A DNA stretch of 64,000 bases from Scyliorhinus canicula (GCF_902713615.1 NC_052171.1:16961952-17025951), one strand, 5' to 3'; counted from the first letter of the stretch, positions 1,043 to 63,226 are shown. The notes: generated by a model not told the origin, from the sequence alone. Numbers and translations: made by a program.

Positions 1043-16376
<15,334 letters not shown>

Positions 16377-16761
16377 CGGTGAAACCGGTTTTGATGCTGT
16401 TTCCCCTCTGTCCCCCCCCCGACTTCGACACTGCAATCACTGACAGCCGGCAGCTCCCGCCGCGCCTGCGCAAACCGACCCGCCGCGCCTGCGCACGCCC
16501 CCTCACTACCCCACACTGCGCCTGCCCGGCCCGCGGGTCCCGATTGGCCCAAGCGGCACGACGATTGTCGGACAGCACCGACCAATAGGATCCACGTTCG
16601 GCCGCCTTGCACCAATCCACGACGGGAACGAGCCTGATTGGACGGTCGCTCTGCCCCGGCCCAACCAATCGGTTCGCCGATCCTCCAAGTCGGGCCTTGC
16701 GGAGTCAGGCCCGAAGCCTGGGCCTGGATTTTCGCCGGCGGCCAGACCGGCGTTGGCGAGC
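16377..16761. promoter_or_regulatory. Bidirectional CpG-rich promoter and 5' UTRs shared by ACTR1B and MARCHF5-like
   Basis: 385 bp between divergent ATGs. NRF1-type GCGCCTGCGCA at 16462 and 16485. Five CCAAT/ATTGG boxes at 16543, 16582, 16612, 16637 and 16665. High CpG density. Confidence 0.85.
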
Positions 16762-25700: not shown

Positions 25701-28700
25701 TTTGTAAGCCATGGATTGGCCCGCTGATCCCCTTTGCTTTTGTGCCAGACAGGAATGAACAGTTGCTGTAGTTCCTCCATGCGTTCCTTGAATGTTTGCC
25801 ATTGTCTATCCACTGTCATCCCTTTAAGTTACTCTCCCCAATCTATCAAGGCCAACTCACGCCTCATATCCTCATAGTTCCCTTTGTTAAGGTTCAGCAC
25901 CCAAGTCTCCGAATCAACTACTTCACTCTCCATCTTGATAAAAAATTCTACCATGTTATGGTCGCTCGTCCCAAAGGGGTCTCGTACAGCCAGATTGGCA
26001 ATGACCCCCTTCTCATTACACAGTACCCAGTCTAAGATGGCCAGCTCTCTAGTTGGTTCCTCCACATATTGGTCAAGAAAACCATCCCGTATACATTCCA
26101 GGAATTCCTCCTCTACGCATTGTGGCTAATTTGATTTGCCCAATCTATGTGAAAATTAAAATCACCCAAGGGCAGCACGGTGGCACAGTGGTTAGCATTA
26201 CTGCCTACGGCGCTGAGGACCTGGGTTCGAATCCCGGCCCTGGGTCACTGTCCGTGTGGAGTTTGCACATTCTCCCCGTGTTTGCGTGGGTTTCATCCCC
26301 ACAACCCAAAGATGTGCAGGGTAGGTGGATTGGCCACGCTAAATTGCCCCTTAATTGGAAAAAAATAATTGGGTACTCTAAATTTATAAAAAACAAAAAG
26401 TTTGTCTTTTTCACAATGCTTGTCTTTGCTCCCAATATTTTTCTCTCCTGCCCTGTTTGAATTTTGTCCTTGGTTTCTCCACCTATCACTTTTCTACCTT
26501 TTGCTTTTGTCCATGCTCCCTCTTTCTCTGACTCCTTGCATAGGTTCCCTCTCCCTGGCATATTAGGGGCTGGTTTAGCTCACCAGGCTAAATCGCTGGC
26601 TTTTAAAGCAGACCAAGCAGGCCAGCAGCACGGTTCGATTCCCGTACCAGCCTCCCCGGACAGGTGCCGGAATGTGGCGACTAGGGGCTTTTCACAGTAA
26701 CTTCATTGAAGCCTACTCGTGACAATAAGCGATTTTCATTTCATTTCATTTCATTATTAGTTTAAACTCTCCCTAACCGTTCTAGCAAATAGCTCCCCTA
26801 GGACATCAGTTCCAGTCCTGCCCAGGTGTAACCCGTCCAGTTTGTACAGGTCCCACCTCTCCCAGAACCGGTCCCAATGCCCCAGGAATCTGAAACCCTC
26901 CCCCTGACATCATCTCTTCAGCCACATATTCATCCTATATATCCTGTCATTTCTATTCTGACTAGCACATGGCACCAGTAGTAATCCTGAGATCATTACC
27001 TTTGAGGTCTGATTTCTTAACTTCCTTCCTAGCTCCCTGTATTCTGGACCTCATCTCTTTTTTTAAACCTATGTTGTTTGTACCGATGTGTACCACGACC
27101 ACTGGCTGTTCACCCTCCCCCTCCAGAATGTCCTTTATCCGCTCCAAGACATCCTTGACCCTCGGCACCAGGGAGTTAACATACCATCCTGGAGTCTCGT
27201 TTGCGGCCACAGAAACGCCTGTCTAGCCCCTTACAATTGAATCTCCTATAACTATTGCACTATCACACTCATTACCCCTCCCCTCTGCAGCAGAGTTTGC
27301 CACGAGTTTGCCTCAACTGAAGCTGATAAGACTTTGCAATTGTAAAGTGTGATTGGACTTGCGTTGGTCGCATCCTTCCAGTTGGTGTGAATCATCCAAG
27401 CCCAATGTGGGCATGTTATCAAAGCGAGCTGCAGAAACCTGTTCAGGTTAAAACCTGAGACCGTGGCTTCAACTGAATTTCCCGCTGTAGCGATCGCGTA
27501 GTGTTTACTGGAAGGAGAGCACATGATTCTCTCAATTGCTGTCCAATATTCCTTCCAGGACGGACGCCACCAGAAGCAGATGAGCTGCCCATTCACCTTT
27601 CTTGCTTCTGCTTTTGCTGACAAAGCAATACATTCCCCGTGAATGTTCTTCTTATTGATCCTGAAGAATGCGAAACGGAGCCAAATGAATGCAATGATTG
27701 TGGATTGCACGTTGACGAAAAAAAGTTGAATGTTTGAAGTTTAAAGAAAGAAACATCAGGCCCATGAAGAAAGCTGTAACCATTGCAGGAATCCACTGGT
27801 TAGCCTCAATTGTTGTCCAGTTCTCACCACCCCACTTGAGGAAGGATGTGAGGGGGTGCAGGAAAGGTTCACTGAAATGTTTCCAGGGTGAGACATCAAA
27901 GGGTAGCTTGAGCACTTTCAAATTCTTCCAATGGGTTATGGGTTTTGCTGGCAAGAACAGCATTTATTGCCAGTCCCTAATTGCCCTCCAACTGAGTGGT
28001 TTGCTAGGCCACTTGAGGCAGTTAAAAGTCAACCACGTTATTGTGGATCTGGAATGACATGTCGGGAAGGGTGACACATTTCCTTCCCCAAAGGATATTT
28101 GTGAAGCAGATGGCTTTTCAAGACCATTGTTTCACAGTAGCCAGATTGTTCATTGAATGTAAATTCCACCAGCTCCGTGGTGGGATTTGAACCCATGTCC
28201 CCAGAGGATTAGCCTGCTCCTCTGCATTACTGGCCCAGTGACATTACCACACAATCACATTCTTGAGGTGTGACTTCAACTTTTAAAACGAGGACACTTC
28301 AAACCAGCAATGATGCTGAAGATCACAATCCACTTATCCCTGCTGAAAGGTGTTCTCAAATTTCACAGCCAGCTTGGACTGTGATGTGGTCTTTGGTTAA
28401 CTCGGCTGTCCATCCTCCTGATTCAGACAAGTACCAGAAACTGGGGAGAACAAGTGGTCGCTGGAGCAGCTGAGCCATTCTATTACAAGAGTTTGTGACT
28501 AAGAATCAAGCTATGCCAGCAGTGTGCCTCAAATGCCTCGGAAGTCAGACTGGGAAGGCATCCAGGCAGTGCGTCAGCACCTAAAATTTCCTTCAAGCTG
28601 TAGCCCAGCACGTGGAAATGGAAACTGAATCCCTACTTTATTGGCTCATTCAGATCTCAACCTGAGAGTACAAAGGTTAGGCTTATGACCAGAAGCATAA

Positions 28701-31700
28701 AGTACAAGAGCAGGGATGTTGTGCTGTCACTGTATAAATAGTTGGTTAGGGTACGACTGGACTACTGTGTGCAGTTCCGGTCACCACATTATAGGAAGGA
28801 TGTGATTGCACTGGAGAGGGTGCAGAGCACATTTGCCAGGTTGCTGTCTGGGCTGCCAGGAGAGATGGGATAGACTGGGGCGCTTTCCTTGCGCCAAAGG
28901 TTGAAAGAGAACCTTACAGAGATGTATAAGATTATGGGGCCATAGATTGGTTTGACAGGAAAGCACGTAATCCATCAGCAGAGGGTCAATAGCCTGGGGC
29001 ATAGATTTAAGAGAAGAGATAGAAGGTGAAGAGAAGGGAAGAAACATCTTCACCCTCAGAGTCTGAAACTGGCTGCCTGAAAAGGTGGTTAATTCAGGAA
29101 CTCCGGCATCATTGAAGAAGTATTTAGGTACTCTCTTGCGCCGCCATAATTTCCAGGTCAATGGGCCAAGCATTGGAAAATGGGATTCGTGCAATCAAAT
29201 CTTTGTTGACTGGCGTGGGAGCGATGGGCTGAATGGCCTCCTGTGCTGTAAACATCCATGAATCTGAGTGGGGGACAGGGCACAGGATCTCTGGAGAACC
29301 AGCCCACAAGCAATCGGCGCATAAAGAGGATATACAACCCCTCCACATGCTCCGTCATTGAATACAACCATGGCTGCTTGGATCTTGGCCCCAACTCCAC
29401 TTTCCTGTGTGCCCATAACCCTTGACTCCCCTGTATTTCATCATCTAGACTTTCCAACCTGTCCCCGTATCCCTTAATTCCTCTTTTTTTCAGTGTCCAA
29501 AAGGTTATCAGTCTTCATCTTGAGTCTCTTTAGTGATTGAGCAGCAAAATTCAAATATTAGGGTGGCACGGTGGTGCAGTGTCCGTGTGGAGTTTGCACA
29601 TTCTCCCCGTGTCTCCAAACGTCTCAAACCCAGAAGATGTGCAGGGTAGGTCGACTGGCCATGCTCAATTGCCCCTTAATTGAAAAAATTATATATTTTT
29701 AAAAACACAAAATATTCACATATGTGTGAGTTTGGAAATCTTTCCTTCCCATCCAACTCCTGATCCTGAGACTATGCCTCCAACATCTGGACTTTGCAAC
29801 CAGGGACAACGGCCTCTCACAACCAAATCCTGCCGCGTGCTGCATGCATATCAGTGAGATCACTAAACTGAAGAGAATTTTCCTTAAAGTACTGCTCCTT
29901 CATCCCAGAAATTAATCCTGTGAGCCTTGGGTTCAGTCCCTCGAAGGACATCAGGATATGTTCCAACCAAAGCCTGGCATAATAGCAGCTAGACTTCATA
30001 TTCTGAGACTCTAACCCGTTGATTGTTGCAAAGCGGGAAGGTAAAGCAAGGTTTGGGTTCCCACAGTGAAATATCCTGCAGACCGTGCATTCCATTCTCC
30101 ATGAATGGCCACTTGGATCGAAGCAGTGTTGGGAAGTTTGTGCCTGTGGAACCTGTATCCCATTCAGAGATTTTAAAAAAATTTTCAAGTGCCCAAGTGC
30201 CTTTTTATTCCCAATTAAGGGGCAATTTAGCATTGGCCAACCCACCTACCCTGCACATCTTTGGGTTGTGGGGGTGAAACCCACGCAGACACGGGGAGAA
30301 TGAGCAAACTCCACACGGACAGCGACCCAGAGGCGGAATCGAACCTGGGGCCTCGGCGCAGTGAGTTAGCAGTGCTAACCACTGCGCCGCCATGCCGCCC
30401 AGATTCAGAGCTAACATTTGCAAGGGAGGGGCGGCACGGTGGAACAGTGGTTAGCACTGCTGCCTCACGGCATTGAGGACCCAAGTTCGATCCCGGCCCC
30501 GGGTCACTGCCCGTGTGGAGGTTGCTCACTCTGCCCGTGTCTGCGTGGGTTTCGCCCCCACAACACAAAGGTGTGCATGTTAGGTGGATTGGCCACGCTA
30601 AATTGTCCCTTCATTGGAAAAAAAACAAATGGGTACTCTAATTTAAGAATTTAAAAAATTTCCATGGGAGGACTTGGGGGGGGGTAAGAGAGAAGAGGAA
30701 AAGGCAAACTTGTTGAATTTTATTTGACAGTGGAATTAGCCAGCATAAACCTGTGCCAGTCCATCTGCGGTTAGTTTGGAAGTGGCCTCACTGACGAGCA
30801 GCTCCAAGGGCCAATGGCATATTTCTTCAGTTATGGAATAAAAATAACTTTACAGCAGCTTAAATATATATTGAAGGGACAACCTCAAATGCAGAATATC
30901 AGGATGAAAGGGATTTTGAATTCTCGGCTGCTTTTGATGAGGTAAGTGGAGCGGGTGAGAGAAAGTGTTGCCCCTGATCAATGAGCTGGGAAGTCGGAGG
31001 CCATCAGCAGCCTGATGAAGGGAGAAGTCGGGTGAAAATTGTCTGGCTCTTGGATTCCTGGCTACTAATTGCACAGGAAGCAGAACCCCGTCAGCTCAGT
31101 TGGCTGGACGCCTGGTCTGTGACGTGGAGCCACGGCAACAGCCCGGGTTCAGTTCCCCATACCGCCTGAGGTTATCCATGGAGGCCCTGCTTTCTCAACC
31201 TTGTCCCTTGCCTGAAATGTGGTGACCCTCGGGTTAAGTCACCACCAGTCAGCTCTCTCAAAGAGGGGTTGAGCAGCCTCTGGTCCTCAGGGCGTTGTGG
31301 CGACTCTCATTCCAGGGGGTGGGGAAAAGGATTTGAAGAAGAAAAATGAGCCAAACTGTGGGACGGCACGACTCCGGCACGGAAGACTGACATGCGGAGA
31401 GATGGTTCACAGTTGACATCAGGATAATGGGCTGAATAACCTCCTTCTGTGTTGTGAAAAGCTCCAATTCTAAATGAGTATATTGGTTGAGATAGTGGAG
31501 GGTCCTGAGAATATCTCCAGGAGCCATACAAGAAGGTTACAGAAAGCGTAATTGTGGTATCTTTCAATTTCCAGTTGCCTTGCTGTGCATTTCTGTTTCT
31601 CAATATGTCTCTCTTCCCCCTTTTAGGGAGGGATTGCCTTTGTTGCTATCAAAGGGGCTTTAAAGGTTTACTTCAGACAACAGCAATATCTGATGCAGGC

Positions 31701-31785
31701 AAATCGCCGGATTCTGAACTACCCTGAGCGGGAAGATGAGCAGGAAGAGCTGCAGGCAGGCTATGAGGACTCTGGCAGTGACTGA
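16762..31785 (+). CDS. marchf5l: MARCHF5/MITOL-like RING-CH E3 ubiquitin ligase; complete 6-exon CDS, 292 aa
   Basis: Exons 16762-16796, 17869-18071, 20489-20619, 21656-21839, 23149-23315 and 31627-31785 are all GT-AG and sum to 879 nt. RING-CH domain CWVC...CRCKGSTKWIHQAC...CPQC plus TM segments. The paralogue (5-like) label is inferred from divergence, the acidic C-terminal extension and the ACTR1B neighbour. Confidence 0.9.
16958..17057. other. Assembly gap (100 N) flanked by C-rich low-complexity sequence
   Basis: N run; poly-C on the left and CCTCAT/CCCC repeats on the right. Confidence 0.99.
17211..17390 (+). mobile_element. tRNA SINE, (TTTCA)n-tailed family
   Basis: CTGGTTTAGCTCAC..GGTTCAATTCCC..GGGGCTTTTCACAGTAAC. 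Confidence 0.8.
17869..18071 (+). CDS. marchf5l: MARCHF5-like exon 2 (RING-CH domain)
   Basis: 203 nt, NCWVCFATDLDDRSAEWVSPCRCKGSTKWIHQACLQRW...FPKL. Confidence 0.95.
18816..18854 (-). ncRNA. Minimal type I hammerhead ribozyme motif (U3-A8 variant, GUC triplet)
   Basis: AGCU-UUGACAA-U-GGGUC-AUCUG-GACUC-GAAAC-GUC-AGCU. Confidence 0.55.
18851..18889 (+). ncRNA. Minimal type I hammerhead ribozyme motif (U3-A8 variant, GUU triplet)
   Basis: AGCU-UUGACAA-A-GAGUC-ACCUG-GACUC-GAAAC-GUU-AGCU. Confidence 0.5.
19043..19383 (-). mobile_element. HE1-type V-SINE nested in an older short SINE
   Basis: Near-identical to 7267-7612; host halves at ~19000-19042 and ~19385-19480. Confidence 0.85.
20489..20619 (+). 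CDS. marchf5l: MARCHF5-like exon 3 (PVVYSLHQVDR...GAVTVMQ)
   Basis: 131 nt, TCAG acceptor, GT donor. Confidence 0.95.
20932..21160 (+). mobile_element. Short V-domain SINE, poly-A tail
   Basis: Same family as 5743-5968. Confidence 0.85.
21656..21839 (+). CDS. marchf5l: MARCHF5-like exon 4 (VVGHKKGLDLMERADP...SNIFP)
   Basis: 184 nt, GCAG acceptor, GTGAGA donor. Confidence 0.95.
22651..23137. mobile_element. (ATT)n-tailed SINE (+) with a nested short SINE (-, 22955-23103)
   Basis: Host tail resumes at ~23108-23137. Confidence 0.75.
23149..23315 (+). CDS. marchf5l: MARCHF5-like exon 5 (FGCPVPRVPAE...NSNLQRTIL)
   Basis: 167 nt, ACAG acceptor, GTGAGT donor; absent from the ORF track. Confidence 0.95.
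23400..24545. mobile_element. CR1-group LINE 3' portion with a short inverted 5' segment
   Basis: Minus 23542->23400 encodes ...SIIRSQVGMFADD; plus from ~23543 continues VQMQLYLDNVQALADK to the tail. Confidence 0.7.
23986..24182 (+). mobile_element. Short solo LTR (197 bp) inserted into a LINE
   Basis: TGTTAG...CTTACA termini, 5-bp TSD AGTGG/AGTAG, internal AATAAA; the host LINE resumes after it. Confidence 0.6.
26170..26398 (+). mobile_element. Short V-domain SINE inside CR1
   Basis: Family consensus match. Confidence 0.85.
26565..26755 (+). mobile_element. tRNA SINE, (TTTCA)n-tailed family, inside CR1
   Basis: Family match; short TATTAG direct repeat at the ends. Confidence 0.8.
28690..29260 (+). 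mobile_element. CR1 3' fragment
   Basis: YCVQFRSPHYRKDV.ALERVQ motif and tail. Confidence 0.7.
30170..30660. mobile_element. Head-to-head inverted pair of short V-domain SINEs
   Basis: Minus ~30170-30400 and plus ~30428-30660. Confidence 0.85.
31085..31310 (+). mobile_element. Further tRNA-head SINE-like element
   Basis: AGCTCAGTTGG (A box) ... GGGTTCAGTTCC (B box) followed by an unrelated body. Confidence 0.5.
31627..31785 (+). CDS. marchf5l: MARCHF5-like exon 6 (GGIAFVAIKG...NYPEREDEQEELQAGYEDSGSD*)
   Basis: Long pyrimidine tract and TTAG acceptor; TGA at 31783-31785. Confidence 0.95.
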   Translation, partial: GGIAFVAIKGALKVYFRQQQYLMQANRRILNYPEREDEQEELQAGYEDSGSD

Positions 31786-48043: not shown

Positions 48044-48772
48044 ATGCTCCAGAATGACACGAAAAGGCAATCAGTTTGCTGCCCCTATCTGGAGCAGAAC
48101 CTGGAGTCCTTGAAAAGTCCTGAGGTCAGCACTGGGGATGGGACTTCCCAGCTGGACTGCCCACCTGCCCCCCCCACCGGCTTGGTTCTGCAAGATCAAG
48201 GGGGCAGCACCTCGACGCTGAGCGCCCTAGGGTGGTCGACCGGCCAGACCAGTGACGAAAGCCTTCTGCAACAGGGGGTCCTGCCGACTGCGATGTTGTT
48301 ACCAAAGATGGTCCACCTGGGGCCTCTCTTTGGAGGGACATTCCCCTCGGTGCAGCAGATGGGGTTGTCGCAGCAGCAGCAGCAACAGCAGCACAGGAGG
48401 TCACCGCTCAGCCACCATCCTCACCAGGGGACCTTCTCTCAGAGGAACAACTTCAGTCCACAGCAGCAAACCTTCAGGGCCCTCAACTGGGGCAGCCATC
48501 AGCACCAGAGTGGTGGAGGGGGTGGTGGTGGTGGCGGCGGCGGCGGCTGGGGCAGCGTCACCAATAACTGCGGCAGGGGATTGAGAAGATCGGCTGGAGT
48601 AATGGGCGTCTCGAACTCAATTCCTACCTGCTCCTCCAAGAGGTCCTACTCCAGTCACATGATGGTGCCCCCTAAACTAAATCGAGGCCGGCCAGCATTA
48701 GCTCCAAAATCCTGGATGGAGGAGAATCCGTTGAGGACGGACGGGAACAGCAATTGGCTGCCTCATCAACAG
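48044..48772 (+). CDS. CPEB2/3/4-subfamily (CPEB3-like) first coding exon: low-complexity N-terminus with polyQ and polyG
   Basis: 243 codons. Motifs PLFGGTFP, RRSP and PPK...KSWMEENPLRTDGNSNWLP match the CPEB3 N-terminal exon (PVFGGTFSP, RRSP, PPK...KSWMEDNAFRTDNGNNLLP). Phase-0 donor CAG|GTAAGC. Confidence 0.85.
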
Positions 48773-51700
48773 GTAAGCCACTTTGTAATTATGGAAATTT
48801 AACAATGTGGTGGAAAATACTTGTGTTATTACTCTTTTAGAACAAGAAATCAGGGCAGGAGTAAGTGTTCCAGCCTACTGATCTCCTTTCATTCCAAATC
48901 CTTACAATTTCCGCGTACCCCTTAATTTCCCCATCTTGGCTCAGTCTGTTCAAGATTTGAGATCATTGGAGTGTTGGGCAGTAAACAAGCGGAGCCCTCT
49001 GAGGTAGAGAATTCCCAAGGTTCACAACCTTCTGAGTGAAGACATTTTCTCTTCATTTCAGTCTCAGATGGCCAGTCTTGTATCTTGACATCTAGAAGCC
49101 TATTTCTTGATTCCCTGGCCAGAGGGAAATATCATCCCCGCCATCTACCCTCTGAAGGCCCCAAAGATATTTTGTGATTGACTGAGGTGACCTTGTTGTT
49201 TTAAAGTTCTGGGAATGCAGGCCCAATCTGTCCTGTCTCTCCTTATCGGCCAATGGCCCTCACAGAATCAGGATTGTTACAGCGCTGAGGGTGACCAGCC
49301 AGCCCATCGTATCTGCACCAGCTCTCTGAATGAGCATTTCACTGAGTGCTGCTTATCCCACGAGCAAGTCCAGTGAACCTTCATTGCATTCGCTCCAGTC
49401 CTTACCTAAGGTCTCTGCTCCATGCACATTCGCCTCATGACCTAGTCAGAACTTAATTACTCAGCACTGTGGGGTGGGGGGTTGGGGCAGCTTTGGGTTC
49501 TATCTCATGAGCAGGATTTGGGGAGCACAGTGGATGTGAGGGAAGGGGGGATGGTCGGTAGGGGAGAGAGTTGTCAGCACCACTTCCTACTTTAGCCACG
49601 TCTGGTCCCCTGCTCTGCTTGGAAAATGCAACAGCGGACATTTACAGTGAAGGCAGGATGGGGGGTGGGCTCAGATGTCATTTCTGCTCACCCCCTTCTC
49701 AAATGTAAATATGCATTTCAGCACGCCAACTTAATTCCGGGGTGTATTTATATTATTACATGGAGTGCAGCAAATATTTACCCAGTCTGCTTTTTTAAAA
49801 TTCACATCATACCTCTCCAGAGTTTATTGTCATGTTGCCCCAGAACCTTCCACGATCTCTGGCATCCTGCACATCCCTGATTTTTAACTGCTCCACCACC
49901 AGCAGCCATGCCTCCAGAGGCCTTGCCTGAACCTGTGATTTCCTCCCTAAACCTCTCTGCCTCTCTCTCTCTCTACTGTTTGAACATTGCTTAAAACCTG
50001 CCTCTTTGGCCTAGTTGCTGATCACCTGCCCTGATATCTCCCTTTCTGCCTTGCTATCAAAATTCTGTTTGCTCACCCTCCAGCAAGGTGGTGTGGGGGG
50101 GGGGGGGGGGGGACATTCTGCTGCTTTCAAGGTGCTATAGAAATGCAAGTTGTTGTTGTTTCCATAAATGAAAAGAAAGGTAGACTGAGTGAATAGAAGT
50201 GGAGCAGCAGCTTCAGCACAGCCTGTCTGGTTTCTATCTGAAGCACTAACCTGTCCTAGCTCTGTTCAGCTGTTGGTGGATCTGCAGCCTGTCAAGCATT
50301 TTCTGGGGTTCTTACAGATTTTGCAGGGTTCTGTATTTTTAAAAAAAATTGTAAGTGTGTGGAAGAGAGTTCTGAGCTGTCTGTTTTAGCTGGCTCTCAT
50401 TCCCTGAAGTAAAGGGATGGATTGATATTATTGTATTTTGTTTTTGAAGGCCTTAAACCTGGACTAAGATATCACTCTGGCTTGCGATGCTGGGGAACAA
50501 ATTGGAGGGCTGCAGATTGTTTATCCTTGTAAACCTCGTTGAACTGGTGGGCAAAGCAGGCTGAAATTAGCAGAAGGACATTTGCAGAAGTGGCACGGTT
50601 TTGGGAGCTGTGACCTTTTTTTGAGGTCCAGGGTAACTGTGCACAGACCATGTGGGGAAAATGGAGGAAGTACTGGTGAAGGATCAGCTAAGAGGCTGGA
50701 CCCCAATCGGGTTCAGCCCCCCCCATTAACGGGGGAGGAGGTGGTTCACTGGGAGCAACCAGAATCTCCGGATGTAGAGAAGGTTGCTGAGATATGAACA
50801 TAGAAAAATACAGCACAGAACAGGCCCTTTGGCCCACGATGTTGTGCCGAACTTCTGTCCTCGATTAAGAACAAAGTAATCCACATCCCCTCATTCTACC
50901 GTAATCCATGTACCTACATGGGTATAATCTGACTGTGATCATCTACCCTTCTCATTCCTTCTGGCACAAGATGCCCTCCCACGTTGTTGAAAATGGGCAG
51001 CTTGTGTTATAACTTGCAGATTTGGCCTCGCAGAAACATTTTCAGCAATGTCTGCTTCGTAAATGAAAACAGAAAACCTGTTTCTCTCTCCGCTGATGCT
51101 GCCTTGCCCGTGTATTTCCAGCACTTTCTGGGGTTTTTTTTTTGTTCTCCATTTCTGGCATTATGCTTTTCGATTAGTGCCTTTTTACGAATTGGTTCCA
51201 GGTCAGCCGGCCGCCTTGAAAGGGGAGTGGGGGGGTGTCTTGGAATGCTGGCAATCTGACATACATTTACTTTGTCGTTTCCTTTCCTTGCATCTTGCTG
51301 AGTTGATTGGAAGGTGCTGCGGGTGATTCATGGGGACAGGTAGCTAAATGTCCTGTGGCTCGGCCACACATTCCCTTTTGCAAACTGTGAGCGGACTGGA
51401 TGCAGGGTTGTTGTTTCCCTGGCTGGGGCAGGGGGAGGGAGGTCTAGGACAAGGCCAGTCACTGTCTCGGGGCGTAGGCCATTTGGGACTGAGATAAGGA
51501 GAAACCTCTTTACTCAGAGGGTTGGTGAACCTGTGGAATTCTCTACCTCAGAAGGCTGTGGGGGCCAAGTCATTCAATACATTTGAGAAGGTTACAGATT
51601 CGTAGACTCTGAAAGGGACAGGGGGAGAGCGCGGGAGTGTGGGTGTTGAGATCGAGGATCTGCCGTGATCATGTTGAATGGCGGAGCAGACCCAAAGGGA

Positions 51701-53637
51701 CAAATGATCTGCTCCTGCTCTCGAAGTTTCTTTATTGTAATCTGGACAGCGACTTGAGGGGGCTGGGGTGGGAGGGCATAGGAACTGAACCCAGTGCACT
51801 CCAGAGCGCAGGTCACTGGATAAGGATTTGGGAACATGAATCTTGGCTTCCTCTACCCAACTCCTGTGAGCAAAGACATTATTTATTAACTCCACTGATT
51901 GTTGCTCCCTAATTGGAGGAGTCTTGACCGAGTCCAGAGGGTTGAACAAGCCACTTGACATGCGTGTGGAGTTTGGAGGCAAAGTCTTTTTTTCTGGCAA
52001 CAAAATTCTGAAGAAAGGCAATTTGCATCAATGGTTTGATTGCTGCTGGCGGCCATTCCTTCAGCTGCCTTGGCTTAGCTCTGGAATCTCCTTCGTCAAT
52101 CCTTGGGGCACCTCCACCTCTCCTCCTTTTTAAGATGTTGCTAAAAGTCCAAGTTTCTGGTCACTTCATGTCTTCTCATATGGCCAGGTGTGCAGGTTTG
52201 CTTGATAATGTTCCTCTGAAACGCCCTGGGGATGTTTCAGTGTGTCAAAGGTGTCCCGTGAAGACATGTTGTCGTTGCTTTTAGAATCTGCCGTTTGATC
52301 TTGGTTTTGCTGTATTTTGTGGGAGGGAGTGGGCCTCAAACCCACGATCTCATTGGGATATTTGTGGGTCCGGGTTGAGGCAGCCTCCATAGCACCTTTC
52401 CTGACCTTTGCATGTCTAATCAGTACTTTACGGCCAATTGAGTATTTCCGTTTTAAAGTAAGTGTGAAATGTGAGAGCCAATTTGCTCTCAGCAAGCTCC
52501 CACAAACAGCCATGAGGTAGTGACCGGAGAGTCTGTTCTTGAATTGGAGCCCAGGGTGACCTCCTCAAATCCTCTTCAAAATAGGACAGTGGCATCTTTT
52601 GTTCACGCCCGAGAGGGAAGACGGGGGTCTCAGTTTAATGCCTCATCTGGAAGATAACGCCCTTGGATTTTGGTAGGGCTGGGGGAAAAAATGAAGATCC
52701 CTGTGCACCGGTCGTGCTGTGGCACGTGCCAGCCAAGGGCAGAGCAGACTGGTAAAACATTCAGATGTCGATGGTGACATCATGACGGTTTGAGGAGGTA
52801 CAGCGGGAAATTGAGCTTCTCTGCCAACATACCTTGAAGGTAAAATTGGTGCTTCTGGTGTTAAATTAAGGGCAAGTGCAGGGAAGCAGAAAATAAATCA
52901 TTCCAAAAAAAATCGGAGGGTTGCGTGTTTATTGTATGCAGTATCTCGCCAGAAATCTGAAGGTCAGAGGAAATTTTCTCCAGCTCCGTCTACCAGAACC
53001 CGGGGAGTAGGAAACACAGGTGTTTCAAGGTGAGGGAGGGCTGCTTCACTGCAAAGTGAATTACGTGGCCCAGAAAGATCATAGCTTGTCCCCCTCCCCC
53101 ACCCTGTCTGAGCCGAACATCGCTACCTGCTGCTGAATGAGTTAGTTCCAGAGTGATGATGCGTGGGGCCCCTGGGCTAGTGAGGGGGCCACTCCGCTTT
53201 GCTTCTGATCCCTGCCCATGATTCCTGGCATGAGTGAGCATTGGCGAGGGCAGCTCTGGGCTTCGCCGTGATGCCCCTTGCTGGGCAAATTACCAGCTGC
53301 TGCTGATTGCCTTGGCTCCTGTGTCAAAATGGCCCACTTGGATCAGCTGTTGTCCAGGGACTAGATTCTTTGTCACCACCGTCCCCCCGTCCCAGCCACT
53401 TCAGAACTCTTATCCATGTGGTCAAACCCCTCCTTAGCCTCTGCCCTCCGTTTAGGCCACCTCCTTCAGATCTCTCAAACTCCCAAGAGCATTTCCCTCT
53501 TCCATCTCTGGCCTCTTTTGAGTAAACCCCAATTTCTCTGACCCAGTGTTGGTGGCTGTGCTTTCAGCTTCTCGCCCCTAAGATCTGGGATTCTTACCCG
53601 TCAGGCCCTCTGTCCCTTCCCCAAACATCTCTTTAAA

Positions 53638-53985
53638 GGGCAGCGCGGTAGCATGCTGGTTAGCATCAATGCTTCACAGCTCCAGGGTCCCAGGTTCGAT
53701 TCCCGGCTGGGTCACTGTCTGTGTGGAGTCTGCACGTCCTCCCCGTGTGTGCGTGGGTTTCCTCCGGGTGCTCCGGTTTCCTCCCACATTCCAAAGATGT
53801 GCGGGTTAGGTGGATTGGTCATGCTAAATTGCCCGTAGTGTCCTAAAAAAGTAAGGTTAGGGGGGGGGGGGTTGTTGGGTTACGGGTATAGGGTGGATAC
53901 GTGAGTTTGAGGAGGGTGATCATTGCTCGGCACAACATCGAGGGCCGAAGGGCCTGTTCTGTGCTGTTGTATGTTCTATGTTCTA
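53638..53985 (+). mobile_element. HE1-type V-SINE
   Basis: Near-identical to 7267-7612. Confidence 0.85.
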
Positions 53986-54002
53986 AAACTCGGCTGAACA
54001 GC

Positions 54003-54155
54003 TGGCTTAGCACAGTGGGCTAGAACAAGGCCAGCAGCGCGGGTTCAATTCCTGTACCGGCCTCTCCGAGCAGGTGCCGGAATGTGTCGACTAGGGGCTT
54101 TTCACAGTAACTTCATTGAAACCTACTTGTGACAATAAGCTATTATTATTATTAT
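54003..54155 (+). mobile_element. tRNA SINE, family of 26565-26755
   Basis: Shared GGAATGTG.CGACTAGGGGCTTTTCACAGTAAC tail. Confidence 0.75.
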
Positions 54156-56454
54156 ATTTATTAACTCCTGTAAAGCACCTCTGGATGCTTCACTACAAGG
54201 TGCTCGATAAATATAAATTACTGACAGATCTCCTCTGCTTGAATAATTTTGACACCATCCAGTGCAGTTTCCCCACTCAGCCACTGAGCGAGGTTATAAC
54301 AACACCTACTCAATCGTAAACCATTTCCATCGATTAGACCTGGAATACTGGGCCCAGAGGTCCCAGTCCCTAACTCCTCTGGATTGGACTACGGACTACG
54401 TTCCATCTGCTCGGGTACAAATAACCTAGTTATCTCAAATGAAGCAACGGGGAGCTCTTGCAACAGAAGTAATCAGCGTTTGACATCACAGCCAAGGTCA
54501 TGCAGCCTAAATTTAGGGCCTTAAAATGAAGGTTTGGTAGTGTTTACAATAAAACATAGAACTTCCTGTGCTAAAGTTGCTGAAAATGCCTGCATTATAC
54601 TGAGCTGCCAGCACTGGATAAATTCTTGGTGTGAGATTTTCACTTGTCAGCAAACCGCTCGAGACATACATCGGAGCCAAAAACCTTTTAATAGCAGCAA
54701 ATGTGGCAGCCACATGAGATTTAAAAGGGAGTCGGTGCTTATTTAGAATGGAAGAGTTAATCAGATAAAGGCAAGTTGTGTTTCAGGATTTTTTACGACA
54801 TGTTGTTGGAAGATTTGCCTGTTTAGGTTGATGAGGGGTCTATAATAAACCAAAGAAGGTGTTTGAAAAGGTGTCCCACAGAAGGCTTCTTGCAAAAGCT
54901 CAGGCATATGGCATGAGGGCAAATGTAACAGCACGGAGAGAAAGTTGGCTGGCACACAGGAAACCCAATCCCAGTAAATGGGTATTGTGCGGAACAGTTG
55001 AAAGAAAGGAAGGACGAACGAACTTGCATTTGTATAGCGCCTTTCACAACTTCTTTTGCTTTGCAGCCACTAAAATACTTTTTCAAGTGTACTTTACTGC
55101 TGTACTGTAGTAAGTGCGGTAGCAAGTTTGCACACAGGAAGCTCCCACAGACACCTGTGTGGTAAAAGGGTGAAACGGTGGCAAAGTCACAGTATCACGG
55201 GACTGGTAATCCAGAGGCCCGGGCGATGGTCTGAGCAAATGGGTTCAAAGCCACTGCATTTCGACTCGTGGAATTTGAATTCCGTCCATAAAAACTAGTA
55301 ATTCCGAGCTGGCCTGGGTGAGAGCAACCACCGTTGTCGTCCGAGTTAAACACCCACCTGCTTGACCAGAGCCATTTGGGGAAGGGAATCTGCCATCCTT
55401 GCTTGGTCTGGCCTACCTTCTGTGACCTGTTTGGGTCGGTCCACTTGTGTTGGCAACTTCCAGAGGTGGAGACAATTCCACCAGAGGGGTGGCAGGGACG
55501 AGGCCGAAGCTGTTCGCACCTGATGCCAAGAGGACCCGGAGTGAAATAGTCAGATAGGTAACGCATCCTAATTCAGCTTTGAGAAGTGTCACGGTTCAGT
55601 GCATAGGGAGGAAATGAGCAGGAAGACCAAGAGGTTTAAATACAAATTCCCTGCCATTCGAAAGCAACACAAATTGCACGTGGATGAACAGGCAAATGTT
55701 ACTTCAAATACAAAGGTAAATTTCACTTTCAACAGTCACTGCAACAGATTCATTTTACTTAACCACGAGCGTTTGCGTCATTTCCCACACAATTGTGGCA
55801 TTACATTGCTGCACAGTTCCACAAAATGCTGTTCTTTATTCATGCAGAGGGTAGGTCAGGAGTCCTCTCTGTCAGCCTCTGAATTTCACAGGTACAATTC
55901 TCATCAGCGCAATTGCATGAAGCCTTTCTCCCTCAAGTCACATCAGTCCTGGTGATGTGGATTCCCAGAGTTCATTTTCAACTCATCAACCAGTAATGTC
56001 CCAGTTCTCCGTTTAGCCACTTCCGCGAAAACACCCAGCTCTTCAGTGTCTTCAACCTATTCACACAGTGTACCAGGTTTTAAACCTATTTAGCCAGCTC
56101 AAGAGCTCCTGGGTCCCGTTCTGCTGAACAGAAAAACTGAATGATTGGGTTCTTTTCCTGACAAGAATTCTCTGTTCTTCCTGTGCCTTTCTGCGTTCTG
56201 TTGTGTCTGTATCTGCGCACTGATCACCTTCTGCTTATATCTGCAGCTCTCGTTTGTGTTTGCGAGGTTTTACGTATTTGGATAATGACACTCTGGAACA
56301 CTTGTTAAGTGAATTCTGGTGTGTTCTCTCTCTCATCCCTGCTGGTTCACTGTTTCTCCCTCTATCTTGCATTACATCTCTTCCTTGCATACATTACTAC
56401 AGCAGAGCTCCAGGAGAGTCAAAGGAGCAAATATATAACGCAAGCCACACAGCT

Positions 56455-57235
56455 TTTAGAACATAGAACAGCACAGTACAGGCCTTTCGGCCCATTTGCA
56501 TGAAGCCTTTCTCCCTCAAGTTATATCAGTCCTGATGATTCGGCCCATTTATCCTAATCTAAGATCAACCTAACCTACACCCCTTCAATTTACTGCTGTC
56601 CATGTGCCTGTCCAAGACTCGCTTAAAAGTCCCCAATGACTCTGACTCCACCACCTCTGCTGACAGTGCATTCCACACACCCACCACTCTCTGGGTAAAT
56701 AACCTACCTCTGACAGCTCCTCTATACCTTCCTCCAATCACCTTTAAATTATGTCCCCTTGTGACAGCCATTTCCACTCTGGGGAAAAGTCTCTGGCTAT
56801 CCACTCTATCCATGCTTCTTATTACCTTGTACTCCTCAATCAAGTCACCTCTCTTCCTTCTTCGCTCCAGTGAGAAAAGCCCTGGCTCCCTCAACCTTTC
56901 TTCATAAGACATGCCCTCCATTCCAGGCAGCATCTTGGTAAATCCCCTCTGTACCCTCTCCAAAGCATCCACATCCTTCCTATAATGAGGCGACCAGAAC
57001 TGGACACAATATTCCAAGTGTGGTCTAACTTGGGTTTTGTAAAGCAGCAGCAAAACCTCGCGGCTCTTAAACTCAATCCCCCGTTAATGAAAGCCAACAT
57101 ACCATACGCCTTAACTACCCTATCAACCTGGGTGGCAACTTTGAGGGATCTATGTACGTGGACCCCAAGATCCCTCTGTTTCTCCACACTTCCAAGAATC
57201 CTGCCTTTAACCCTGTATTCAGCATTCAAATTTGA
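56455..57235 (-). mobile_element. CR1 3' fragment
   Basis: ORF 56565-57053 RPHLEYCVQFWSPHYRKDVDALERVQ. Confidence 0.88.
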
Positions 57236-58779
57236 CTTTCTCAGCTGTTTTTCTGTTGGTACTGTTTCCAGGTCACGTGGACCAGTATTTCTTCTGACCC
57301 AAGAAAGGTTCCAGTGATGACTTTAGAACTGATGCACAATTGAAGTAATTTTCAAATATTCGTAAAAATAATTACAGATTCCACAAGACCTTTCAAAATG
57401 ACCTATTTTCTGAGTCACAACAAAGTATTCTTGAAGTGTAGTTACTGTTGTGACATGGGAAATGCAGCAGCCAGTTTCCGCACAGCATGATCCCACAAAC
57501 AGCAATGTGATAATGACCAGATGATACCATTTTAGTGATGTTGGTTGAGGGGATGGTTCTTGGTCACAGGCAATTGGGTCTTTAAACTGCTCAGGGGCTC
57601 AGCACCTCTGCCTCCCTCAGTTCATGCTCCAATTCTAATTCCTCCCAATACTTCCAAAGCAATAATAGTAAAATTGTACAAGGATGTTCATTGTTGGGAG
57701 ACCCCGCTATCGGCAGGCTAGGGAGGTTGTAGAACGCGTAAAGCTTGGGTTCAAAGTGTTGCTCAAGATAGTGCTTAGTTACGAGTGGAGATGTGAGGTG
57801 CAGGGACCTGGAGGTTTATATAATTGGTTCTGGGTTTTGGGAAGTTGAATCGGCAAGGACGATTCTTTAGTTTATGACTCAAATGAGGGGTCACTAACGC
57901 TAGAAAGGCATTGAGGAGAGTGGTTCTTGGCCATCTGCTTAGCAACAATGGACCCCTGTGATGTATCAATCTCTGATCTGCCCTGCATGTCTCTCTCCAT
58001 AGCCTTGTCTCTCACTTGCTTCAAATATACTTCTACCCATTCTATTTTAAATAGAACGATGCAATTTGGTTTGATTTTATTTTGTTGCAACAAATTGCCG
58101 GTAAAGGCACAATGTGTCGAGTAGGCTGCTTTTGGTGTTTGGCTTCCTTCGCGAGCAAGCCACGTGTGCTGTTGGATTCCTGCATTGGTTCTCACTTCCA
58201 GGGGAGTTAGTCAGGCAAAGCTATGGAGGCACAGTGGTTTGTTCCGGTGTGAAAGAGTCAACTGCAGGATCAGTCAGGGCTAAGACCCCAATAGGTGAAT
58301 GCCCCACTCCCATCGTGATGGCTTTCCTTTTTGCCTCTTCAGGTAGAGCTGACAAAGCGAAGCACTGCATCCCGTTGCCACTAATACTTGGCTATTTCCT
58401 GGACCTGCAGGCAGGCTGCACGGCATTCAGGCCAGAATCGAGCTTGGACTGGATTGAGCATAATCTTCGGAACTGGGCCTAACATTTCTGGCCTAACATT
58501 TCTGCAAGACAGTATGGGAAATGTGTCCTGTGACTAGTCACAGGAAGGAGTGAGGGTTAGACTCCCACATGGGAGGAAGCCATTAAATCCCTCAAACTTC
58601 TACCACCTTTTGCCTTTCTAAGGATTTCCTAATTTTATTTCAGGAAGGCGGACTCGGCCTGATTTTTATACCGTACCCCTTGCGTTCAACGCGATCCCCG
58701 AGCAGGGAAATGATTGCTTTCAATCTACCCCATTGGTTCCTCTGTTGAGAAAACGCCGAGAGATCAGGCCATCCGAGAC

Positions 58780-59150
58780 TGGGGACTGTGCGATGAGAAA
58801 GAAATCATTGGCAATCTAGTTGTGTTGCATGTGGCTGAGCGGGCAGAACATGGTGGAATTTTTCATCAAGGTGGAGAGTGGTATAGCTGATTCTGAGGCC
58901 AGGGTCCTGAATCTTAATAAAGGAAACTACGACAATATGAGGCGCAAGTGGGCTGTGATAGGTTTGGAAACGTTACTGAAAGGAATGATGGTGGACAGAC
59001 AATGCCAAACATTCAAGGAGTGCATGAATGTCTAGAGCAGAAGTAAAACTGCAAAGTTTACCGTGTGATGGTTTCCAAGGGAAATTAGAGATAGTATCAG
59101 ATCCATGGAAGAAGCATACAGGTTGACCAAGTGATTTTGGCCAGGATAAA
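58780..59150 (+). mobile_element. CR1 APE-linker fragment
   Basis: NMVEFFIKVES..VLNLNKGNYDNMRR, homologous to 25829-26065. Confidence 0.75.
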
Positions 59151-59400
59151 CCACAAGAGAAAATACTGGACAATCTCAGCAGGCCTGAACTGTGGAGAGA
59201 TCTATCACTGGCCCTCTATCCAGCCCCCTCTCCTCAACATTATCAATCTGACCCTGTTTTCAGTTCTCCAGCTTTGACAGAGTTTCCAGACTGGAAACGT
59301 CAGCTCCCTTCTCTCTCCACAGATGCTGTCAGACCTGCTGAGATTGTCCAGTATTTTCTGTTTTCGTTTCAGATTCCAGCATCCGGAGACATTTGCTCTT
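59150..59400 (+). mobile_element. Penelope-derived element with partial inverted arms and a degenerate hammerhead (59270-59305)
   Basis: GAAAATACTGGACAATCTCAGCAGG ... CCTGCTGAGATTGTCCAGTATTTTC inverted pair. Confidence 0.6.
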
Positions 59401-59619
59401 ATGATTATGGCTGGGATGAACATTGCCCAGGAGATATCCTTGCTCTGCTCAGATTCAAACTTGCCCTGAGATCTTTATTATTCACCCCCGAGCGGACTGT
59501 TCTCTCGTTTAACGCCTCGCGTGAAACATCCACTCCCTCAGTGTTGCACTGGAGTATTAATCTGGATTCTTTGCCCAAGTGTCTGGAGTAGGTTTCGGGA
59601 TCATGTCTCACTTGAATGA

Positions 59620-60348
59620 GAGTGATTAAGTTGCAAGAGGATACAATTCGCTCAACCAGGTGCATACTGCCTCTCTGCAGAGTGACCCAGTCCGTCCTGT
59701 TTCGTCCTGCTCTATCTCCATAGCCTGATAAGTTTATTTCCCTGAAGCACCCATCCAATTTCCTTTTGAAATCACTGATTTTTCACCAACTTGGTAGGCA
59801 GTGAGTCCCAGGCCATTGTCTCGCACTGCAAGAACAAGTGCTCCCTCACATCCCGCCAATGCCTTAAATCTGTGCCCCTGAACCCTCGCACCTGCAACGA
59901 ATTGGAACAACTTTTCTTTGTCGACCTTCTGTAAATCTGCCACAATCTTGGACGCTACCAAAAGTCTTTTCCAAGGGGAATAACTCCAGCTTCTCCAACC
60001 TAACCTTGTGCTTCAGATCACTCATCAGCGGAATGATTCTAGTGAATCTCCTCTCGAGGACCACTTACGGCGAGGCCACAGCTGGGGTACTGTGTTCAGT
60101 TCTGGTCACTGCACTAACTATGTGAAGGAGAGGAGGGTGCAGAGGAGATTTACCAGAATGTTGCCCAGGATGGAACATTTTCGCTGTGAAGAGAGGCTGG
60201 ATAAATTCAAGTTGTTTTCTTTGGAGCTGAGAGGGCACCTGATAGATGTGTATAAGGTTATGAGAGGCAATGGGTACAGGGTGGATCAAAACAGCTGTTC
60301 CCCAAGGGTCAATAATCAAGGGGGCATAATTTTACGATGAAAGGAAAT

Positions 60349-60384
<36 letters not shown>

Positions 60385-60600
60385 CCCTCCCCAGAGGGTG
60401 CTGGGAATGTGGAATGCACTGCCCTGGGAGGGTCGTTGAGGCACAACCTTTAACAAGTCCTTAGATAAGCATTTGATGTCAGAACATTCAAGGCTATGGG
60501 CCATGTGCTGGGCAATGGGATTAATGTAGATTTAGTCATTTTTTGCCGGTGTAGATGATGGGCTGAAGGGCCTCTTCTGTTCGGTATGATTCTGTGTATG
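59620..60600. mobile_element. Two divergent CR1 3' fragments (minus 59620-60060, plus 60065-60600)
   Basis: Both encode RRFTR..P..RL..L.LF.LE. Confidence 0.7.
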
Positions 60601-61960
60601 ATTCACTTTGGAAAGTGGGGCAACCCATACTGGACACGCTGCTCCAGCTGTGGCCTCATCAGGGCTTCATGATGAGAGCGCTGCCACGTTGAGTCACGTT
60701 GCTCCTGTGGAGTCGTTGCCTCCCTGAGCAGACGTTAAGGTCAGCCCTTGTCCAGCGTCACCCTGGAAGTAGAATTTATTGCCTTTTCATCTGAGTATCT
60801 TGTTCCCAATGACTGCAGTCTCTATTAGCTCTGTCACTCCTGGCTTGCTTCAAAGATATGTCTTCAGAGGTTTGAAAGTTAAATTAGTGGTTAGGAAGCT
60901 GAAACAGGGTGGGGGTGGGGGGGGGTTACCATTGGCCTGGGCAAAGGCCCTGTTTGGGTGGGGGCAGGAGGTAAATAAAGCAGGATATTTGGCAGGTTCT
61001 GTGTTTCTGATCAGAATTATATCAGTTCCTGACCACCTCACCCCCTTCCCCCTTTACAAAAAGCTGTTCATAATCCGCACTATCCCTCTGGCCATGGTAA
61101 AACAGCCCGTTGATAATCACAGAATATACTTGTACGTCAAGAATGGGTGAGGTATCAGATCATGCTGGCTGCTTGTGTAACCATAACATAAGGATAAGGT
61201 TACAGCACAGAGGAGGTCAGTTCAGCTCATCCCACTCTGGCGTCCTCTCCCCAGGTGCTTAATTCCCGTTGCCCAGATTCAACCTGCCTCCGCCACACAC
61301 TCTCCACTGTTACCCAGGCAATTAAAAGACGAAAAGAAAATAGTGTGCACCTTCGGCAAGTGTACAAGGGTGGAATCTGCAGAAGAGGCTGCGTGAGAAG
61401 TGCTGGAGTCATTGCTCCTGTTGGAAGAGAGCTGGCCGGTGTTGGGTTCTTTTTCTTCATGCTCTGTAACCTCTTCACAAACTCTGCCAGATTCTATTCT
61501 TCACCAGTGACTCAGCCACTTTGCTCTGTGTCAGAGGGTGCATTTCACAGTGTGCTGTATGATGCTCCCTTTCCATTCATTTCCCACCGTCTGCGCATCG
61601 CATCATTCAGGTGGTGGCATAGTGGTATTGTCCCTGGGCTAGTAATGCAGACACCTAAGCTACTTCCCTGAGCACCGAGGTTCGAATCCCAACATGGCAA
61701 ATGGTGCAGTTTGAGTTCAACAATAATCTGGAACTAAAATTCTGATGATGGCCATTGATGTCGTAAAAAAACTTAGCATGTCTTTCAGGGAAGGAAATGC
61801 CGTCCTTATCTAGTCTGGCCCTAATGTGATTCTAGATCCACAGCAGTATGGCCCTGTGAAATGATCCAGCAAGCCACTCAATTCGAGGGCAATTAGGGAT
61901 GGAAATTAAAATGCTGGCCCAGCCAGTGATGCCCACAATCCCGTGGATGAATACAAAAAA

Positions 61961-62320
61961 GGGCGGCACGGTAGCGCAGTGGCCAGAACTGTTTCCTCAC
62001 AGCGCCAGGGTCCCGGGTTCCGTTCCAGCCTCGGGTCACTGTGTGGAGTTTGCACATTCTTCCCAGGTCTCACCCCCCCACAACCCAAAAATGTGCAAGG
62101 CAGGTGGATTGGCCGCACTAAATTCGCTGTGTCTGCTTGGGCTTCCTCCGGGTGCTCCGGTTTCCTCCCACAGTCCAAAGATGTGCAGGCTGGTTGCAGT
62201 TACGCCCTGGTGTCCAGAGACGTGAAGGTTAGGTGGGGTTGTGGGGACAGAGTGGGCCTCGATCGGGTGCTCTTTTGGAGGGTCGGTGCAGAGCCAAATG
62301 GCCTCTTCCTGCGCTTCAGA
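61961..62320 (+). mobile_element. Composite V-domain SINE
   Basis: Short-form head fused to a long-form V core and tail. Confidence 0.7.
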
Positions 62321-63135
62321 ATGGTTAACTTGTGTTCTCTCTCTCTCTAAGAGCAGCTCGTAGTTCCCCTTCCTCATCTTTCAGGCCTGCAATTTTACTC
62401 CATTATCAGATAATGATCTAGTTCTCTTTTTGAAGGCCATAATACTACCTTTGACAATCACGCTCTGAGGCAGCGCATTACAGATCCAAACCACTTGGTG
62501 TGTATCTTTTAAGAAAGCTTTTCCTCGTGTTGCAGCTGATTCTTTTCATTCACACGAAGGTGTCCTCTGGTTCGCAGTTTGGCAGCAGTTTCCCACTCTG
62601 CCTCGACCCCTTGTTATTTTGAACACGCAGACACTGAAAGGTGACCTGATGTGTGTCCTCGTGATGCTGACAGGGGTAGATGTGAGGAAGATGTTCCCGC
62701 TTGCAGGCGAGACCAGAGTTAAAGGCTGCAAATGGACGACCGCTCATCAATCTGACCGAGAATTTGGGATGAAGCTGATTGTCCACAGGTTGGGTTCTGT
62801 TATTGAGGAAAGTAAAAGTAACTGCGCACCCAGGAATTGACTCTTGCCATCCAGGCTCCCACGGGAGAAAAGGCCCATTTGCTGGACACATTGGGGAGCT
62901 TCAAGCATCCATGGACCTTGACCCCAAAAGTCAGCAATCCCAAGGGAGGAGAGGAAATAAAGAAAGTTTCCACCAAGAACGGTTTTGCTGTACACACTCC
63001 CCTTCAGGAATGTGATATCAGCGCTGCTTGGTTACATCTCAGTGAGTGGATTGTAACTTTTCTTGTGACCTCTGAATTGTTCCCATCTCCTTCCTCACTT
63101 TAATAGTTTCTTTTTTTCATGTTTTTCCTTTGCAG

Positions 63136-63226
63136 GAATGGACACACCCGTACGATACATTCAACATGCACTCATTGGAGAATTCCCTGATTGATATCTT
63201 ACAGAATGAACAGGAACCACTCAAAG
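63136..63226 (+). CDS. CPEB-like second coding exon (EWTHPYDTFNMHSLENSLIDILQNEQEPLK-G); gene continues beyond the window
   Basis: 91 nt, strong pyrimidine tract with GCAG acceptor, GTGAGT donor. HSLENSL motif is conserved in CPEB2/3/4. Confidence 0.9.

Follow-up and report, generated by a model that had tools for sequence, protein, structure and literature searches.

Which CPEB gene is encoded in a 64,000-nucleotide stretch of the genome of the catshark Scyliorhinus canicula (GCF_902713615.1 NC_052171.1:16961952-17025951; hereafter the window), and how old is it? An earlier note, made from the sequence alone, had read two exons in this window as the beginning of a strongly diverged gene of the CPEB2 subfamily. 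It was thought to be a sister of CPEB3 and the fourth copy left by the two vertebrate genome duplications, retained in cartilaginous fish and lacking in mammals. We refer to this gene as CPEB-X. The window contains the first two coding exons of CPEB-X, a fifth CPEB gene of vertebrates and fourth member of the CPEB2/3/4 group that is present throughout sharks and rays, and we consider it probable that this gene is an old block duplicate. According to this reading, an ancestral block shared with CPEB3-MARCHF5 would have been copied when the lineages of cartilaginous and bony vertebrates had not yet separated, and the second of the two early vertebrate genome duplications is the most plausible occasion. 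Elasmobranchs would have retained the copy adjoining a MARCHF5-like gene and ACTR1B, whereas chimaeras and bony vertebrates would have lost it.

The two exons have the CPEB3 architecture that had been attributed to them; coordinates, phase, the length of the second exon and its quoted peptide could all be confirmed in the window (Table 1). Canonical splice sites flank both. Exon 1 starts with the ATG at 48044 and ends with ...CATCAACAG/GTAAGC at 48772, and its product, which begins with MLQNDTKRQ, forms a Q/G-rich N-terminal domain of low complexity. Exon 2 is bounded by ...TTTGCAG/GAATGG at 63136 and ...CTCAAAG/GTGAGT at 63226 and encodes the peptide EWTHPYDTFNMHSLENSLIDILQNEQEPLK(G). A large first coding exon of low complexity that closes in phase 0, followed by a 91-nt exon with the pattern ...YD..N.HSLE.SL..., marks the CPEB2 subfamily and was read directly in the window. 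CPEB3 has the same pair of exons, including the PYDTFN-HSLENSL motif. A Pfam search with exons 1 and 2 gave nothing significant and a single sub-threshold chance match (YxzE), which is expected because the N-terminus is of low complexity. In the whole window no Rfam family reached the gathering threshold, and thus neither a CPEB3-type ribozyme nor another known RNA is present in the part of intron 1-2 that is covered.

We scanned 1.8 billion representative proteins with HMMER, using exon 1 as query. The best match was a whale-shark (Rhincodon) open reading frame (ORF) with E=1e-118, followed by N-termini of the CPEB2 subfamily only. Of these, Mustelus CPEB3 ranked first at E=2e-17, and tetrapod CPEB2 came next at 2e-11. 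Word-indexed searches led to full-length relatives of 560-576 aa in at least 20 elasmobranchs, which combine the MLQNDTKRQ exon and the exon 2 peptide with RRM1, RRM2 and ZZ. CPEB-X occurs in at least ten sharks (Chiloscyllium, two species, Hemiscyllium, Stegostoma, Rhincodon, Carcharodon, Scyliorhinus torazame, Mustelus, Heterodontus and Heptranchias) and in at least eight rays (Leucoraja, Amblyraja, Hypanus, Hemitrygon, Narcine, Pristis and Mobula, the last with two species). Identity of exon 1 to the orthologues ranges from 67 to 99% over 19 elasmobranch models. Exons 1 and 2 together are 98.9% identical to S. torazame XP_072341756, and the exon 2 peptide does not differ from that of Chiloscyllium plagiosum XP_043537208. 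The NCBI pipeline names the orthologues "CPEB2-like" or "CPEB3-like"; CPEB-X is catalogued in public annotation, yet it is unclassified there.

Three skate RNA-seq contigs of ~2 kb each (L001-L003; runs SRR5172150-52) carry complete CPEB-X ORFs of 564-566 aa and therefore represent spliced mRNAs. The splice between exons 1 and 2 falls in these transcripts exactly where the window predicts it, reading ...CATCAGCAG/GAATGGACC... in L001 as compared with ...CATCAACAG/GAATGGACA... in the window, and the 48772^63136 junction thus has its equivalent among assembled transcripts. According to the method of Nei and Gojobori, the ratio of nonsynonymous to synonymous substitution rates (dN/dS) is 0.14 between the window exons 1 and 2 and the skate cDNA, at a dS near 1, and 0.018 between the two skate contig types over the whole coding sequence. 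Moreover, the RNA-binding region (RBD) of CPEB-X is 95-98% identical between sharks and rays. The genomic loci of Leucoraja and Pristis have eight coding exons, with an orthologous intron 1 of ~17.6 kb and ~17.7 kb, respectively. Skate transcripts, constraint and intact ORFs show that CPEB-X is a real, conserved and transcribed gene.

The window exons might instead be the only CPEB3 of the species, or a decaying pseudogene copy. The name "CPEB3-like" of some orthologues would fit such an explanation, as would a 414-aa Amblyraja model that skips the HSLENSL exon and the RRM1 exons. This short model looks like an annotation gap, since the close relative Leucoraja has all eight coding exons. Intact ORFs of full length in ~20 species, the complete transcripts, the low dN/dS ratios both between catshark and skate and between skates, and a separate canonical CPEB3 in the same genome make this explanation exceedingly improbable.

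This canonical CPEB3, found in the catshark assembly GCA_902713615.2, encodes 645 aa, spans 138 kb and sits head-to-head with its own 282-aa RINGv (RING-CH) gene. Human CPEB3 and MARCHF5 are arranged head-to-head as well. Every elasmobranch checked has a canonical CPEB3 besides CPEB-X, so that the independent CPEB3 locus on which the earlier proposal depended does exist. In the same species canonical CPEB3 and CPEB4 ("cpeb4b") lie on chromosomes other than that of CPEB-X (two cases that may depart from this are considered below), and yet another locus in Rhincodon contains a CPEB2-type N-terminal exon. The name "cpeb4b", given by NCBI to the single chondrichthyan CPEB4 (seven models), follows the zebrafish duplicate; there is no teleost duplication here, and the label could pass for an extra paralogue in chondrichthyans.

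Maximum-likelihood trees were calculated with IQ-TREE (LG+C20+F+G4) from 12 CPEB-X, 23 CPEB3 (11 chondrichthyan, 12 bony), 4 CPEB4 and 2 CPEB2 sequences; in some of the runs two arthropod Orb2 models were added. Two badly predicted teleost CPEB2 fragments were dropped after the first tree run, and the sample holds no cyclostome or amphioxus sequences. In every partition the crown CPEB3 clade excluded CPEB-X, with support of 93/87 for the HSLENSL exon, linker and RBD (345 columns, rooted with Orb2; hereafter the RBD tree), 99/97 for the full length without outgroup and 99/96 for the N-terminal exon alone (L-INS-i alignment). CPEB-X is thus neither nested in gnathostome CPEB3 nor the sole CPEB3-type locus, as a CPEB3 orthologue would be; it is a separate locus found in elasmobranchs only. 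The proposed sister relationship with CPEB3, against CPEB2 and CPEB4, holds with moderate support in the RBD tree (80/77) and over the full length (91/80), and the N-terminal exon alone does not settle it.

In the better-behaved trees CPEB2 and CPEB4 group with each other and not with CPEB-X. The N-terminal domain also fits CPEB3. It is colinear with the CPEB3 N-terminus (33-37% identity), to which it is closest (74-90 bits, as compared with 58-66 for CPEB2 and 32-39 for CPEB4), and similar in length (~240 aa versus ~252 aa in shark CPEB3), whereas the N-terminal domains of CPEB2 and CPEB4 are far longer (318-517 aa) and weakly similar (32-66 bits). CPEB2 and CPEB4 resemble CPEB-X in belonging to the same subfamily, in their domain set and RNA-contact residues, and in the NMHSLE.SLIDI of their HSLENSL exon.

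The shared NMHS...LIDI is one of three observations that would suit a different placement, in which CPEB-X dates from the two early genome duplications as well but is the sister of CPEB2 and CPEB4, or of one of them. The second is that approximately unbiased (AU) tests on the RBD do not reject CPEB-X with CPEB2 and CPEB4 (p=0.24) or with CPEB4 (p=0.245). The third is the full-length tree with arthropod outgroups, which speaks against our placement by grouping CPEB-X with CPEB2 and CPEB4 at 99/96. The root of this tree falls inside bony-vertebrate CPEB3, which is implausible, and we deem it an artefact because CPEB3 evolves very slowly and the N-termini of the outgroups cannot be aligned. We therefore set the tree aside as a guide to the root; unrooted, it is compatible with a split of CPEB-X and CPEB3 from CPEB2 and CPEB4. 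Together with the pairing of CPEB-X and CPEB3 in the other trees, the colinearity and length of the N-terminus and the MARCHF5 paralogues that adjoin both CPEB3 and CPEB-X (the neighbours of CPEB2 and CPEB4 lying outside this comparison), this makes a CPEB2/4 affinity very unlikely.

The chromosomal setting would fit an old duplication of a whole block. The neighbours that had been claimed for CPEB-X are indeed present: an ACTR1 gene and a MARCHF5-like gene stand head-to-head, and the start codon of CPEB-X lies 16 kb downstream of the latter on the same strand. At the CPEB-X loci of Leucoraja and Pristis, flanks of 10 kb were covered, and no MARCHF5-like exon was detected in them. When one exon of the window ACTR1 is compared with the solved mammalian ACTR1A, 6 of its 61 residues differ, several of which we take to be B-type residues of human ACTR1B; from these residues we read the gene as ACTR1B. 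The catshark genome accordingly holds two CPEB-MARCHF5 pairs, CPEB-X with the MARCHF5-like gene and CPEB3 with the 282-aa RINGv gene. In human, CPEB3-MARCHF5 (10q23.3) and ACTR1A (10q24.3) are located on the same chromosome arm, and ACTR1B is found at 2q11, a region long considered paralogous to 10q24. Duplication of the whole block predicts a second CPEB-MARCHF5 pair adjoining ACTR1B, and the observed pair fits this prediction. Synteny and tree position thus favour the earlier proposal of a fourth ohnologue from the two vertebrate genome duplications, at a strength limited by the long stem of CPEB-X, by the composition of the tree sample and by neighbour orthology that was judged from residues.

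Several observations weigh against this origin. Restricting the AU test to the RBD leaves a grouping of CPEB-X with chondrichthyan CPEB3 unrejected (p=0.10), and with the N-terminal exon alone the rejection is marginal (p=0.042). The stem of CPEB-X is long, amounting to 0.25 substitutions per site in the RBD and ~1 over the full length, and long-branch attraction towards CPEB2 and CPEB4 could therefore pull CPEB-X out of CPEB3. The MARCHF5-like gene and CPEB-X are in tandem, unlike the head-to-head MARCHF5 and CPEB3. In Carcharodon (GCA_017639515.1), CPEB-X (XP_041065669) and CPEB3 (XP_041065516) are reported from scaffolds of identical length, 122,117,421 bp, and their accession numbers are 153 apart. 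The Scyliorhinus chromosomes are of nearly equal size, with 143.7 Mb for that of CPEB-X in S. torazame and 145.0 Mb for that of CPEB3 in S. canicula. We read the co-location in Carcharodon, and possibly in Scyliorhinus, as the probable result of later fusions. Finally, a search with the RBD found the CPEB-X clade only in elasmobranchs: Callorhinchus yielded CPEB3 and CPEB4 but no CPEB-X, and no member was seen among bony vertebrates. Since CPEB-X was found only in elasmobranchs, an old origin implies that chimaeras and bony vertebrates lost it in at least two events. The statement that the gene was retained in cartilaginous fish thus applies throughout elasmobranchs and not to chondrichthyans as a whole, while its absence from mammals agrees with the search.

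Many of these points would be accommodated by a later segmental duplication of the CPEB3-MARCHF5 block on the elasmobranch or chondrichthyan stem, followed by a burst of divergence, with the position of CPEB-X in the trees as a long-branch artefact. Under this explanation the restriction to elasmobranchs requires no losses, and the very long stem with slow evolution afterwards, the RBD test, the apparent sharing of one scaffold in Carcharodon and an N-terminus closest to CPEB3 all find a place. The full-length AU test, however, rejects CPEB-X with chondrichthyan CPEB3 (p=0.009) as well as with elasmobranch CPEB3 (p=0.0009), and the other partitions add marginal rejections, namely that of the N-terminal exon given above and p=0.036 for CPEB-X with elasmobranch CPEB3 in the RBD tree. 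Moreover, in most sharks and all rays checked CPEB-X lies on a small chromosome of 15-28 Mb or is otherwise separate from the chromosome of CPEB3. Small chromosomes with CPEB-X are those of Chiloscyllium and Stegostoma, CM054041 of Leucoraja and CM019883 of Pristis. A random insertion would also not be expected beside ACTR1B, whose ancient paralogue ACTR1A is linked to CPEB3 in human. We judge a later duplication unlikely and favour the duplication of the block before the split of chondrichthyans and osteichthyans.

The RRM and ZZ exons of CPEB-X lie outside the window and were analysed in orthologues. Orthologues that have these domains include that of S. torazame. Pfam recognizes the tandem RRMs (RRM_7, PF16367) and CEBP_ZZ (PF16366) in four orthologues, and a CPEB-X orthologue matches the solved RRM12 of CPEB4 with 396 bits. 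CPEB3 has the same order of RRM1, RRM2 and ZZ. The downstream exons, for which pseudogenisation had been considered, are intact in orthologues whose exons 1 and 2 show 99% identity to those of the window. For CPEB4, 23 residues have been listed that contact UUUUA or position the two RRMs (Afroz et al. 2014, PMC4083092). We found 21 of these 23 to be identical in CPEB-X, and the two exchanges, E131D and I144V, are conservative. The RNP motifs are kept in the orthologues, and in the ZZ region all nine Cys/His positions compared by eye with canonical CPEB2-4 are kept too. Because RNA-contact residues, RNP motifs and ZZ positions are kept, CPEB-X is predicted to bind U-rich elements of the cytoplasmic polyadenylation element (CPE) type in 3' untranslated regions, like CPEB2-4. 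Once bound, it may control poly(A) length and translation as these proteins do.

Other parts of the protein have changed. The RBD of CPEB-X carries ~15-18% clade-specific substitutions, while that of canonical CPEB2-4 is otherwise almost frozen; it is ~82-84% identical to the RBD of CPEB3, whereas the canonical proteins, compared by eye, differ from each other at few positions. About 30 of the clade-specific substitutions lie off the RNA face, as close to the start of RRM1, where IIATFCCFGQL replaces ITASFRRFGPL. In addition, the three small linker exons of CPEB2-4, which read KHYPPSGPPM..., RLGLNFPHPGTDN... and ...FGRRRG in CPEB3 and include the basic ...GRRRG-RSS phospho-site, are absent from all CPEB-X models and from the skate transcripts. 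The alternatively spliced linker between the HSLENSL exon and RRM1 by which the CPEB3 group is recognized was thus not found. Intron 2 of Leucoraja and of Pristis gave no credible match to a linker exon in tblastn searches. One tblastn hit in the Pristis intron, at first a candidate relic of such an exon, proved to be a poly-C tract.

Since the linker exons are missing and clade-specific substitutions have accumulated off the RNA face, the regulation and the partners of CPEB-X are probably different from those of CPEB2-4. A further step would be to regard it not as a spare copy but as a fifth vertebrate CPEB class that is distinct in function, in which the CPE-binding surface was kept, the linker regulated by phosphorylation and microexons lost and the non-RNA face of RRM1 remodelled. 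We put this forward tentatively and consider it doubtful. If it were true, CPEB-X would be constitutive or differently regulated, with partners of its own, and would have been under strong constraint since the split of sharks and rays.

The single-copy arthropod Orb2, an outgroup from before the duplications, shares the RRM1-RRM2-ZZ region with CPEB-X (~80% identity over the aligned part); the N-terminal domains of the two proteins are unrelated. The best hits of the RBD search were the CPEB-X clade at 742-780 bits, two Orb2 models from arthropods at 713-740 and, with nothing else in between, CPEB3 at ~650. One of the two models, a CPEB2-like model of the barnacle Pollicipes pollicipes, contains an internal duplication of ~130 aa spanning RRM1, probably an assembly or annotation artefact, by which its score is inflated; the score of the Anopheles model is unusually high too. 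No HSLENSL motif was found in the barnacle Orb2 model, and the mosquito model is N-terminally incomplete.

The features of the window are collected in Table 1. The six-frame scan of the window did not reveal where the MARCHF5-like gene has its first coding exon. Between this gene and ACTR1 exon 1, in the GC-rich region of their bidirectional promoter, there is a 100-N assembly gap at 16958-17057, and the missing exon may lie at or near this gap. The C-terminus of the MARCHF5-like protein carries an acidic tail, ...NYPEREDEQEELQAGYEDSGSD. Canonical MARCHF5 is not known to have such a tail. With one MARCHF5-like exon as query, the ESM Atlas gave nothing but fragments of transporters without meaning for this gene. 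A tandem or minisatellite repeat of ~2.5 kb occupies 9995-12609 in an ACTR1 intron; it is open in several reading frames (- strand frames) and shows an extreme strand skew (GC skew 0.58, AT skew 0.67). A short interspersed repeat present in many copies fills the intergenic space and intron 1 alongside fragments of long interspersed elements (LINE), of which the one in intron 1 is the ORF of a reverse-transcriptase tail.

Table 1. Genes, exons and repeat-derived reading frames in the 64,000-nucleotide window (positions counted from its first letter; SINE, short interspersed element).
Feature	Position	Strand	Basis or remarks
ACTR1 (centractin) gene, 11 coding exons, complete	1046..16385	-	exon ORFs
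MARCHF5-like RING-CH gene	17869..31785	+	six-frame scan: RING-CH exon (CWVC...WIHQACLQRW) and transmembrane-region exons
MARCHF5-like exons	17869-18072, ~20489-20619, 21656-21841, ~23148-23315, 31627-31785	+	
CPEB-X coding exon 1	48044..48772	+	ORF (243 codons, phase 0) and GTAAGC donor
CPEB-X intron 1 (14.4 kb)	48773..63135	+	GT...AG boundaries; LINE and SINE fragments inside
CPEB-X coding exon 2 (91 nt)	63136..63226	+	splice sites; PYDTFN-HSLENSL motif; phase 1 end
LINE reverse-transcriptase ORF fragments	24646-25819 (-), 40180-41292, 56565-57053 (-)		intergenic and intron 1

A survey of CPEB evolution in vertebrates from 2025 describes four paralogues from Chondrichthyes upward (PMC11965684). 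Our literature searches on CPEB ohnologues, sharks and marchf5l retrieved no publication on CPEB-X or on a fifth vertebrate CPEB.

Overall, our data add a fifth CPEB in sharks and rays to the four of the CPEB literature. With CPEB-X a known family gains a new member, which is notable for the loss of regulatory exons. If it is the old duplicate that we favour, the ancestor of jawed vertebrates had four CPEB2-type genes and two CPEB-MARCHF5 pairs. In other respects CPEB-X is another ancient duplicate that was lost in mammals. With its RNA-contact residues kept, the remainder of the RBD diverged and the regulated linker exons absent, CPEB-X constitutes a natural experiment, which could help to separate RNA binding from regulation in the CPEB family.

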